Shown: positions 5,477 to 54,192 of the stretch, piece after piece
How the letters are laid out: each line of letters starts with the position of its first letter
Position numbering within the stretch: the stretch's first letter is position 1
Sequence record: ON287375.1
Reading direction: 5' to 3' (one strand)
DNA: 64,000 nt
Notes under the pieces: model-generated
Told to the model about the DNA's origin: nothing
The model's database searches: none
Seen by the model: the letters and a program-made list of their open reading frames with translations, nothing else
Made by a program: the position numbers and the translations under genes

Positions 5477-6284
5477 TTTCGATTACCTAGACTGGTGCTA
5501 TGGTGGTATGGAGTCTCTGCTCAATAATCATACTCAAGCTGACTTTAAAGCAATGATGGGTGGAGAGTCCTATTACTGCTTACATCTTGATGCTAGTAAT
5601 TATGCTGGCATGGAAGATAAGTTTGCTGATGGTATTAAGAAAGCAGCTAGAACTCTGTATGACAATATCACCAACATGCTAAAGCGTATTCGTGAATACT
5701 TCTTTGGTGACGGCGAAAAGGCCGCTGATCAAGCACAGGCTAATGCTGAAGCCACTATCGGTGCTCTGATGGAAATGCGTGGTGATACACCTATTCCTGA
5801 AGACTCTCCGGCCCGTAATCCTGATACCTACATTAAACCTTTAGAAGGTGGCGTCGAGTTTAATGAACTTAAAGATGAGAACACCGCTTTAGGTACTGCC
5901 ATCGATAAAGTTAAATCAGCAGCTATGAAAGTACGTGATGCAGCCACTGTTGCACAATTACGTAGCGTTTATACTGAGATTGGTAAAGCAGCTACTGTTG
6001 GTAACAAGGTGGTAACCGATACTTTACGTAAAACCTTAGGTGCTGCTGAACAAGCTTCTCGCAAACTTCAGAATGCTAAAATTCCTAAAGACGGGGATAC
6101 TGCAGAAGTTAAGTCAGCTATCAAAGCTGAGAATGCTGAAGTGGTTGCAGAGGCAAAAGAAGAAACCAAAAAGGCTAGACTGGTTGGCGGCGTCCGCAAT
6201 AAGTTTGTGGGTGCTTTAAATGCAATTAGCCGTACAGCTAAAGGTGTTAAAGAAAAACCAGTAGAACCAAAGTTCAAGGGTTAA
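5445..6284 (+). CDS. putative inner-head protein paralog
   Basis: AAGGAG SD 6 nt before ATG 5445. GMES and GMED sites precede an amphipathic helix; Ala/Lys-rich. Confidence 0.6.
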   Translation: MDQTQTSLDADFDYLDWCYGGMESLLNNHTQADFKAMMGGESYYCLHLDASNYAGMEDKFADGIKKAARTLYDNITNMLKRIREYFFGDGEKAADQAQANAEATIGALMEMRGDTPIPEDSPARNPDTYIKPLEGGVEFNELKDENTALGTAIDKVKSAAMKVRDAATVAQLRSVYTEIGKAATVGNKVVTDTLRKTLGAAEQASRKLQNAKIPKDGDTAEVKSAIKAENAEVVAEAKEETKKARLVGGVRNKFVGALNAISRTAKGVKEKPVEPKFKG

Positions 6285-32523: not shown

Positions 32524-33009
32524 TTATTTAACCAACTTCAAAGAGAGTTTAGTTTTCTCTGTAGAACCGTCATCAAAGTTATCGATGATCTGGTTTATGT
32601 TACTGCGTAGTCGGCCAACAACTTCGTTCAGTCCATTGATACGATCGTTAGAAGCATCAAGCTCCTTAGTAGTACCGATTAACAGGAGCCGGGTATGTAG
32701 ATAACACATTTTAAAGTCATCAGCAGCCAAGCAATCATTGTTAGCCAGGAACTGATCCAAATTACCAATCATTGGTTCTATAGGTTTCCAATCATCAGTA
32801 TATATGTTGGTTGGTACATCAGTTAGAGATGGCTTTAGTGTTACTAGCTGGCTTTTGTACAGGTTGAGCTTTTGAAGCTCCGTCTTTGCTTCCACGTACG
32901 TTTCCGCTTCCGATATCTTCGGACCGCTGCAAGCGCAGATCATAAAGCTCAGACAAATTACCAGCATCCCTTTTAGGGTCATATCCGTATTTTTGATAAA
33001 GGTCTTCAT
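32524..33009 (-). CDS. o-spanin (Rz1-like outer-membrane lipoprotein)
   Basis: AAGGTG SD before ATG 33009. Signal peptide MKTFIKNTDMTLKGMLVICLSFMICA followed by a lipobox Cys; C-terminal coiled coil; overlaps the i-spanin 3' end in another frame. Confidence 0.65.
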   Translation of the reverse strand: MKTFIKNTDMTLKGMLVICLSFMICACSGPKISEAETYVEAKTELQKLNLYKSQLVTLKPSLTDVPTNIYTDDWKPIEPMIGNLDQFLANNDCLAADDFKMCYLHTRLLLIGTTKELDASNDRINGLNEVVGRLRSNINQIIDNFDDGSTEKTKLSLKLVK

Positions 33010-33268
33010 ATTCACCTTCACGTTTAAGGTTATTAGCGTAACTAGACTTCTGTAAGTTCTCAGTCCATTCACGCTGAGCATTGGCTGTTTTAGTCATATT
33101 CTCCGCAGTTACAGAGATACGGTCAACAGCTGTAGTCAGTTTATCAATGGTATCTTTACTTACAGTACTATCCTGTTTAAAGATTAACCAGCCACCAATG
33201 AACAACACCAATATCCATAAAGCGATGGTGTTCAAAGCAGCTAGCTTATTTTTAAATGACTCGTTCAT
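32819..33268 (-). CDS. i-spanin (Rz-like inner-membrane protein)
   Basis: Single N-terminal TM (LAALNTIALWILVLFIGGWLIF), then a periplasmic coiled coil; overlapped by the lipoprotein gene. Confidence 0.65.
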   Translation of the reverse strand: MNESFKNKLAALNTIALWILVLFIGGWLIFKQDSTVSKDTIDKLTTAVDRISVTAENMTKTANAQREWTENLQKSSYANNLKREGEYEDLYQKYGYDPKRDAGNLSELYDLRLQRSEDIGSGNVRGSKDGASKAQPVQKPASNTKAISN

Positions 33269-52798: not shown

Positions 52799-52809
52799 TG
52801 GAATACCTC

Positions 52810-52845
52810 CTCAGACTTCCTAGGCGAAAGCCTAAGAGGTCTGGG
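52810..52845 (+). terminator. GAAA-loop hairpin
   Basis: CTCAGAC..TAGGC-GAAA-GCCTA..GTCTGGG with a T-rich tail. Confidence 0.55.
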
Positions 52846-52943
52846 GTTTAGGTAATATCTTTTATTGTTTGTTTCAATACTTTGCTAACACGCAGCGTAT
52901 ACACCGTCTAAAACGGTTGTATAACTTTATTACTGTCACATAT

Positions 52944-52969
52944 TTTCAGGCAGATATTATCATCATGTA
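52944..52969 (+). promoter_or_regulatory. putative phage early promoter
   Basis: TTTCAGG-CAGATATTATC-ATCA-TGTA. Confidence 0.65.
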
Positions 52970-53015
52970 AAAGTATAATCTTTTATTCTATTTAATTAAA
53001 CTTATAGGTAACAAA

Positions 53016-53825
53016 ATGAACAGTAAGACCCAGAGCAGCCTAATGAGCATATTTATCTTGCTCATGTCACTTGTATGGATCTCCACTGTTTCGACTGCAC
53101 ATGCATCTGTCGGAGCTAATCCAAACGAGTACACCACTAAAGTAGTGATGAAACGTTTTGATGGTTTGAAAGAGCATCTTTATGAAGCTTCTAAAGTAAG
53201 TGGATTCGACATGGTTGATTTAGTAGCCATATCAAGTATTGAATCTACTTTACGCCCCAATGTTAAATCGCAGTACTCTTCTGCGAATGGTGTGATGCAA
53301 TACACCCGCTCAACTTGGAAACAGGACCGTAAATTGTACGCCAAACAACTTGGTCTACCTGCTACCGTTCAAGTCACTAATCCAAGAGCTAATCTACTTA
53401 TTGGTGCAACCGCCCTATACAACGTTAAACAATTACTCATAGAAAAATCACATCTAACCGACAAGACAGTCCGTATAGGTGATCTTTATATGAGCCATTT
53501 GGTTGGTACTGGTGGAGCACTTGCTGTTATCAACTCTAATAGCAATAAACCTGTAAATCAAATACTCCGGATTACCAAGGGTAATTGGAGTATGTATTAC
53601 AAACCGAATGGCCAAGTGAGAACTGCCCGCGAATTCCGTTTGTATATGGATTATCTTGTCAAGCGTGAACGTAGCTTCTATGAGAAAGAAGTACGCCGCT
53701 TCCAGATTGCCAAAATTGCTGCACCTATCGTTAGTCCATTCGAAGACAACCTCTGGGGTAAGCAGCTAGCTCAAGCTATTGCCAACACCAGCAAGTATGT
53801 CGGATATAACGATTTAAATAGTTAA
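53016..53825 (+). CDS. lytic transglycosylase (SLT, phiKZ gp144-like catalytic domain) with N-terminal signal peptide
   Basis: ISSIES (catalytic E), SANGVMQYTRSTW and DLYMSHLVGTGGA motifs; signal-like MNSKTQSSLMSIFILLMSLVWISTVSTAHA. Confidence 0.8.
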   Translation: MNSKTQSSLMSIFILLMSLVWISTVSTAHASVGANPNEYTTKVVMKRFDGLKEHLYEASKVSGFDMVDLVAISSIESTLRPNVKSQYSSANGVMQYTRSTWKQDRKLYAKQLGLPATVQVTNPRANLLIGATALYNVKQLLIEKSHLTDKTVRIGDLYMSHLVGTGGALAVINSNSNKPVNQILRITKGNWSMYYKPNGQVRTAREFRLYMDYLVKRERSFYEKEVRRFQIAKIAAPIVSPFEDNLWGKQLAQAIANTSKYVGYNDLNS

Positions 53826-54160: not shown

Positions 54161-54192
54161 TAACTAGGACTGGTTAACTCCGGTCCTAGTTA
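54161..54192 (+). terminator. hairpin with TATG tail
   Basis: TAACTAGGACTGG-TTAACT-CCGGTCCTAGTTA, then ACCTATGTTTGT. Confidence 0.7.

Follow-up and report, generated by a model that had tools for sequence, protein, structure and literature searches.

YUBABA_00410 of the Serratia phage vB_SmaM-Yubaba encodes a phiKZ-gp144-like lytic transglycosylase that carries a conserved Sec-type signal peptide where gp144 has a peptidoglycan-binding domain, stands behind a promoter motif of the published early class, and coexists in its genome with a second, signal-less lysin. The fold and catalytic residue, the architecture and conservation of the signal peptide, the promoter class and the co-occurrence with another lysin are directly supported by the comparisons described below. 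Our preferred reading, to which we give an even chance, is that the product is exported early through Sec and, as an accessory transglycosylase, conditions the sacculus without needing the holin.

The window, by which we mean the whole 64,000-nt stretch analysed here, comprises bases 1-64000 of ON287375.1 (255,663 bp), and the 1.1 kb around the gene matched this record at 100% identity with identical coordinates. NCBI places the genus Petsuvirus, to which Yubaba belongs, in Chimalliviridae, the nucleus-forming jumbo phages. The open reading frame (53016-53825, + strand, 269 aa) is labelled "putative endolysin" in the record, and the gene, its family and its promoter have all been annotated or published already. 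New here are the second, signal-less modular lysin of Yubaba, which makes YUBABA_00410 an additional enzyme, the family-wide retention of the signal peptide, transglycosylase and early motif, and the anti-correlation between the gene and host bulging. We found no paper on this signal peptide, its coexistence with a canonical lysin, the conservation of signal and early motif, or the anti-correlation with bulging, and a search combining Chimalliviridae, transglycosylase and signal peptide returned no secreted-transglycosylase paper among the results listed. The statements about this gene in a sequence-only reading that preceded the present work all proved correct where they could be checked against the sequence.

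A gp144-like catalytic domain

On sequence comparison, YUBABA_00410 is a family-1 lytic transglycosylase of the phiKZ gp144 type with its catalytic glutamate intact, and as such it would be expected to leave 1,6-anhydro-MurNAc ends. The earlier description of a gp144-like SLT domain with an intact catalytic E was borne out. The protein scored 29.3 bits against Pfam SLT (PF01464; gathering cut-off 21.3) and matched the PHROG transglycosylase family phrog_4067 (E 2e-43). In a phmmer search of the PDB, phiKZ gp144 was the closest solved protein (E 1.4e-8), with E. coli MltE also close, and the alignment placed I75-E76-S77 on gp144 I114-E115-S116. An AlphaFold2 (AF2) model built from 26 homologues had a mean pLDDT of 83 and an all-helical, goose-lysozyme-like fold; its best Foldseek match was 3bkh (gp144; E 9e-8, rmsd 2.8 Å over 166 columns), followed by MltE in second place and then by MltC, MltF and Slt.

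The catalytic residue E76 (codon 53241-53243, +) is invariant in 26/26 aligned homologues. Across the same alignment E76, S77, G92, D156, Y158, H161 and G164 are wholly or almost wholly conserved, and a D-x-Y-x-x-H-x-x-G motif downstream of E76 is invariant. The gp144/MltE-like domain spans approximately residues 38-215; behind it comes a helical tail (residues 216-269) that shows little conservation and has no counterpart in gp144. The predicted mature enzyme, residues 31-269 (53106-53825, +), is a 27-kDa protein with a pI of 9.8 and no cysteine. BLASTP of YUBABA_00410 against the tail lysin YUBABA_01390 and against YUBABA_01420 gave no significant similarity, so that neither is a recent paralogue of it.

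A conserved Sec-type signal peptide

The N-terminus of YUBABA_00410 (residues 1-30; 53016-53105, +) has the features of a classical cleavable Sec/signal peptidase I signal, from which export and cleavage are predicted. Its n-region contains the only lysine of the segment (K4), its core is rich in Leu, Ile, Phe, Met and Val with a Kyte-Doolittle 11-residue maximum of 2.9, and A28-H29-A30, at positions −3 to −1, directly precedes S31. With no lipobox and no cysteine anywhere in its sequence, the protein is not a lipoprotein, and without an RR in the n-region its signal is not of the Tat type. A signal peptide with these elements, replacing the peptidoglycan-binding domain, had been read from the letters alone; it is indeed present, and its architecture is conserved in the homologues.

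A word search recovered 48 database homologues of 251-269 aa, many of them from contigs as long as jumbo-phage genomes. The n/h/c architecture of a signal peptide is present in all 48, most of which have small residues at −3 and −1, and it is present too in the orthologues of Kc263, D6, PS1, Joad, RAY, Miami, ChrisDB, SPLA5c and PCH45. In the 26 aligned homologues, position −1 is always alanine (23) or glycine (3), position −3 is alanine (20) or valine (4) in 24, and position +1 is serine in 25. Mean identity among the aligned homologues is 30% in the signal-peptide region versus 57% in the mature catalytic domain. The letters of the N-terminus thus drift while its properties are kept, which is the pattern in which a functional signal peptide evolves.

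An early-class promoter and a predicted two-gene unit

Directly upstream of the gene lies an early-type (virion RNA polymerase) promoter motif at 52942-52975 (+), consisting of a T-rich element, the core GATATTATC at 52953-52961 preceded by TTTTCA, and then a conserved TGTA. A repeat finder joined 52942-52986 to two further intergenic sites (repeat family D1), and the motif with core AGATATTATC has about 28 copies in the Yubaba genome, mostly at operon starts. An iterated position weight matrix (PWM) gave 29 genome sites, 28 of which are on the + strand. When left out of the matrix, the YUBABA_00410 site scored 31.5 bits, and 15 bits or more was reached at only 28 of 511,268 genome positions. 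Copies of the motif precede YUBABA_02220, the nuclear shell protein chimallin (phrog_4795, E 9e-125), and YUBABA_02370, a homologue of the phiKZ non-virion RNA polymerase (nvRNAP) subunit PHIKZ071 (E 3e-35). In phiKZ, too, an early promoter motif stands before the shell gene, and the early genes include those for the nvRNAP.

The motif corresponds to a promoter that has been described in close relatives. The N1M2 paper reports essentially the same consensus at 31 sites, equates it with the OBP promoter, which according to the same source was deemed early by Cornelissen et al., relates its core to phiKZ TATATTAC, and remarks that it precedes a "putative lytic murein transglycosylase" (PMC7058600). 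The phiKZ-like early promoter is an extended −10 plus a T-rich element (PMC8244752), and the Yubaba motif has both an AT-rich, −10-like core and a T-rich element, in about 28 copies that include those of hallmark early genes. Wherever transcripts of RNA polymerase-encoding jumbo phages were profiled, the one motif accessible to bioinformatic search was the early promoter, while the middle and late promoters of these phages are not predictable (PMC7598289), so that later or continuous expression of YUBABA_00410 is also possible. The '−10 centred' rule of the same source predicts a transcription start near 52967 and a 5′ UTR of ∼49 nt. Assignment of the motif to the published OBP/N1M2 early class is well founded as a class assignment, by which the gene would be expressed early; the earlier claim of an early-promoter copy directly upstream of the gene holds in this sense, as a statement on promoter class. 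Sigma-70-like promoters were no commoner in the region than in shuffled sequence, and transcription by the host RNA polymerase is therefore not indicated. In public sequencing data the stretch is present in 20 runs; the four RNA-type libraries among them, prepared from ticks or wastewater, yielded only short contigs scattered across the region.

Two hairpins lie upstream of the promoter. A strong terminator-like hairpin (52805-52846, +; −32.1 kcal/mol, z −6.6) lies 3′ of the upstream gene YUBABA_00400; none of 200 shuffled sequences folded as well, the same sequence is kept in N1M2 and OBP, and it appears to mark the end of the preceding transcription unit. A small second hairpin stands ∼20 nt upstream of the promoter (52898-52923, +; −9.1 kcal/mol, z −1.6 in Yubaba). 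This pre-promoter hairpin is kept in Yubaba, N1M2, OBP and Kc263, with counterparts at ∼5826-5851 of locus L009 and ∼2834-2861 of locus L013, and the OBP and Kc263 equivalents have other stem letters (z −2.6 and −3.7). As a separate observation, YUBABA_00400 (52244-52798) has a sub-threshold match to PF25620, the phiKZ major-capsid-protein family (18.9 bits versus a cut-off of 27), and its Kc263 counterpart is annotated 'putative capsid protein'.

Translation of YUBABA_00410 would start behind a weak Shine-Dalgarno sequence, AGGT (53006-53009, +), 6-7 nt before the ATG and within a recurrent ACTTATAGG element. An element ACTTATAG(G/A) recurs just 5′ of the start codons of six + strand genes, at 53000-53008 and 62735 of the window and at genome positions 74966, 113762, 121682 and 192286 (all +). 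Four of the six genes stand downstream of an early-promoter copy, and the element is also found upstream of the transglycosylase in N1M2 and OBP; it could be a translation or processing signal.

No terminator was found directly 3′ of YUBABA_00410. The downstream neighbour is YUBABA_00420 (53887-54150, +), a signal-less 87-aa protein of phrog_16812 (unknown function) that holds this position in eight phages. The next terminator-like hairpin, with a 13-bp stem, comes only after it (54161-54192, +) and is the probable end of a two-gene unit; in phage Miami a terminator is annotated at the equivalent place. The arrangement therefore looks like promoter, transglycosylase, small ORF and terminator. 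By position, YUBABA_00420 is probably co-transcribed with YUBABA_00410, and a functional link between the two proteins is possible. The gene lies in the midst of replication and repair genes (SbcC, ligase, RNase H).

A second, signal-less lysin and the lysis genes of Yubaba

Outside the window, at 155341-156204 of ON287375.1, Yubaba carries a modular endolysin candidate, YUBABA_01420, which is annotated as hypothetical. It lacks a signal peptide and combines a transglycosylase domain with two PG_binding_1 repeats. Over its N-terminal 105 residues it shares 50% identity with the peptidoglycan-binding repeats of OBPgp279, the biochemically characterised modular endolysin of OBP (PMC3352856), and its position is syntenic with that of the gp279 gene, which stands just after the virion RNA polymerase genes of OBP. 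The C-terminal domain matches PDB 9udh (E 5e-30) and is of another transglycosylase type than the OBP catalytic domain; YUBABA_01420 has thus kept the OBP-like repeats with the catalytic domain swapped for a 9udh-like lytic transglycosylase. Searches of the Yubaba genome for Phage_lysozyme, Amidase_2, Peptidase_M15_4 and GH108 found none of them, and a GH19 search matched only in the giant tail protein.

The presence of this signal-less modular lysin makes YUBABA_00410 an additional enzyme. A canonical holin-dependent endolysin has no export signal, is late and lysis-linked, and is the soluble lysin of its phage, and YUBABA_00410 departs from this description; the view that it is unlike a classical late endolysin gains from both the separate lysin and the signal peptide. 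In phiKZ, lysis proceeds through a classical holin-endolysin-spanin cassette whose endolysin, gp144, requires the holin gp142 (PMC12894885), and knock-down of gp144 protects the host. By analogy with phiKZ gp144, the signal-less lysin would be the main lysis enzyme in Yubaba, and YUBABA_01420 rather than YUBABA_00410 is probably its main endolysin.

An overlapped i-spanin/o-spanin pair lies at 32524-33268 on the − strand. It was identified from an N-terminal transmembrane domain in a 149-aa ORF, an overlapping-frame lipobox-like I-C-A-C and a weak match to an Rz-like spanin PHROG. Its distance from YUBABA_00410 is 19.7 kb, in accordance with the figure of about 20 kb proposed earlier. The o-spanin (32524-32772) seems to be annotated too short: its frame runs on upstream (32524-33081, −), and the extension contains a signal-like segment and the lipobox-like I-C-A-C and overlaps the 3′ end of the i-spanin gene (32819-33268). 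Across the Yubaba genome, the spanins and a 4-TM holin candidate are located elsewhere, with no endolysin adjoining.

Distribution among relatives

At least 10 chimallivirus lineages retain the combination of signal peptide and transglycosylase. Within Petsuvirus, orthologues are present in Yubaba, Sureiya, N1M2, SXP01, Survivor, pEt-SU and OBP, for which the N-termini of Yubaba, N1M2 and OBP were read. Orthologues with a signal peptide are also present in Kc263, the Aeromonas phages D6 and PS1, Joad, Miami, RAY, ChrisDB, the SPN3US group and PCH45, and six genera share the gene order SbcC, (ORF), transglycosylase, small ORF and, further on, ligase. In 11 of 13 genomes the promoter motif lies within 150 nt upstream of the orthologue and is the single best PWM site of the fetched locus; the RAY and PCH45 orthologues have no PWM-detected motif in these 150 nt. 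No orthologue of the secreted transglycosylase was found in phiKZ or Goslar.

In every tested genome that carries the secreted enzyme, a signal-less lysin with a peptidoglycan-binding domain is encoded as well. Full-length YUBABA_01420 orthologues are present in N1M2 (91%), PS1 (52%) and Miami (39%), PG_binding_1 ORFs of 245-336 aa in OBP, Kc263, D6, Joad, PCH45 and RAY, and a GH108 ORF in ChrisDB, while gp156 of SPN3US combines GH108 with PG_binding_3. In OBP, for example, the orthologue OBP_149 coexists with OBPgp279. Replacement of the canonical lysin type on several occasions, with the secreted transglycosylase retained, argues for a distinct role of the latter. The SPN3US gene for gp156 (JN641803.1 135425-136042) is annotated as hypothetical and its product has no signal; on its domains, gp156 is a likelier canonical endolysin of this phage than gp198, which bears that label and for which we found no paper mentioning it.

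A proposed role in conditioning the sacculus

In our preferred reading, YUBABA_00410 is the first gene of a two-gene unit whose promoter belongs to the class recognised by the injected virion RNA polymerase, and it would be transcribed early in infection. The protein would be made in the cytoplasm and exported via the host Sec system, signal peptidase I would cleave after A30, and a 27-kDa, basic, soluble enzyme of the endo type would be freed into the periplasm, where it would cut glycan strands without a holin. Its likeliest use would be the thinning or remodelling of the sacculus over the long latent period, leading to a fast final lysis by holin, endolysin and spanins. We infer the early timing, the export and cleavage, the activity before lysis and the benefit to the phage. 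When soluble periplasmic transglycosylases are over-expressed in E. coli, cells become larger and rounder, and lysis is partial and survivable (PMC10139938). Since E. coli tolerates such enzymes, one that reaches the periplasm early would weaken the wall without necessarily being lethal straight away. Against the preferred reading stand the RAY and PCH45 orthologues without the early motif. In addition, an early onset of transglycosylase activity in the periplasm might do harm, and the enzyme may instead be held inactive.

Such inactivity is central to the most serious rival, a latent secretory endolysin of the Lys44 type, which we consider doubtful but worth weighing. Here the enzyme would be exported and processed early, would stay inactive until a holin or pinholin collapses the membrane potential, and would act as the main or a co-equal lysis enzyme. 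A cleavable Sec-type signal on a gp144-type catalytic domain is consistent with this, as are the annotation of orthologues in SPN3US-like phages as endolysin and the 4-TM holin candidate and spanins of Yubaba that stand without an adjoining endolysin, and Sec-route, holin-independent endolysin export is presented as a known strategy in the available excerpt of PMC7143992. However, a signal-less lysin that includes a peptidoglycan-binding domain, the type proven as the phiKZ lysis enzyme, is encoded by every tested genome, and the gene stands among replication and repair genes behind an early motif rather than with late or lysis genes. Furthermore, no regulatory element for potential-dependent activation is visible.

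A quite improbable reading, in our judgement, is an early envelope role with no part in the final lysis, such as cell enlargement or shape, a division block, superinfection exclusion or muropeptide release. The early-type promoter and the predicted holin-independent export fit such a role, the enlarged and rounded E. coli cells show that enzymes of this kind can act on cell shape, and the strict co-occurrence with a separate lysin across lineages in which the lysin type was swapped suggests a distinct and conserved function. In contrast, one form of this idea, which the sequence-only reading had offered as bulging of the cell around the phage nucleus, fails. Marked host bulging is described for phiKZ and Goslar and little shape change for RAY and PCH45 (2026 review); bulging thus occurs without the gene, and the gene occurs without marked shape change, which argues against a role in bulging. 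Of the proposal of a holin-independent, early wall-remodelling enzyme, the part that stands is the one supported by the non-classical endolysin character, the Sec-type signal and the early promoter class, and the part that falls is the bulging example. More speculatively, and in our view unlikely, many nucleus-forming phages would share a step of 'envelope conditioning', conserved and independent of the holin, in which an enzyme secreted within the first minutes of infection reworks the host sacculus to an end other than lysis (rival-phage exclusion, control of growth or division, or muropeptide signalling), with the 87-aa protein as a dedicated cytoplasmic partner.

Least probable by far is a membrane-tethered or SAR-type enzyme, kept on the inner membrane by an uncleaved N-terminal segment until release: the Yubaba h-region is rather long (about 14-20 residues), but it is strongly hydrophobic (Leu/Ile/Phe/Met/Val-rich, with a Gly/Ala/Ser/Thr fraction of 0.27) rather than weakly hydrophobic, Gly/Ala/Ser-rich and free of a cleavage site as a SAR domain is, the conserved A-x-A and near-invariant Ser +1 follow the signal peptidase I pattern, and the signal peptides of several homologues, at only 17-19 residues, are too short for a stable anchor, so that the SAR endolysin put forward earlier as an alternative is not supported.

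Our preferred reading of an exported accessory transglycosylase bears on a process that has only recently been worked out in nucleus-forming jumbo phages, for phiKZ (PMC12894885). Judging from the genomes, a large part of Chimalliviridae carries an extra muralytic enzyme that would bypass the holin and whose production seems to begin as soon as infection does. Should this early timing prove true, phage attack on the wall would not be limited to entry and exit, and the enzyme would offer a handle on how the envelope is managed through a long latent period. For annotation, the "putative endolysin" of Yubaba and SPN3US-like phages is probably not the main endolysin, and the likelier candidates are labelled hypothetical. 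YUBABA_00410 also provides a transglycosylase scaffold that is basic, Cys-free and predicted to be naturally secreted.

Comparison with known systems

The closest solved protein, phiKZ gp144 (KZ144, PDB 3BKH), shares with YUBABA_00410 the Glu-Ser motif, the endo-type family-1 domain and an origin in Chimalliviridae. It differs in having an N-terminal peptidoglycan-binding domain and no signal peptide, in belonging to a holin/spanin cassette and in being holin-dependent (PMC12894885). YUBABA_00410 instead has a Sec signal and an early-type promoter, is separated from the spanins by 20 kb, and lacks an orthologue in phiKZ. E. coli MltE/EmtA is, like YUBABA_00410, a single-domain, endo-acting transglycosylase with Sec export to the periplasm. 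MltE, however, is an outer-membrane lipoprotein, whereas YUBABA_00410 has a 50-residue helical C-terminal tail and neither a lipobox nor a cysteine, and should therefore be soluble.

Holin-independent Sec export of a muralytic enzyme is likewise found in Lys44 of the Oenococcus phage fOg44 and in the SAR endolysins P1 Lyz and phage 21 R. Each of these secretory and SAR endolysins is, as far as is known, the only one of its phage; production is late, and activity is gated by the membrane potential. In contrast, Yubaba has a separate canonical lysin, an early-class promoter and an N-terminus that is not SAR-like. In excerpts of the literature available to us, enzymes of the VirB1/EtgA type and MltA-like enzymes of Bdellovibrio appear as Sec-exported small transglycosylases for local, non-lethal opening of the wall; no envelope-spanning machine is encoded beside YUBABA_00410, and the likeness to these enzymes is one of logic only.

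The nearest described relatives are the 'putative lytic murein transglycosylases' OBP_149 and N1M2_122. A term search found no mention of a signal peptide in the N1M2 paper (PMC7058600) or the OBP endolysin paper (PMC3352856), and the available part of the N1M2 paper does not discuss coexistence with an endolysin. Both proteins are true orthologues of YUBABA_00410, with 55% (OBP_149) and 85% (N1M2_122) identity, stand behind the same promoter, and share the Yubaba gene order of SbcC, one intervening gene, transglycosylase, small ORF and ligase.
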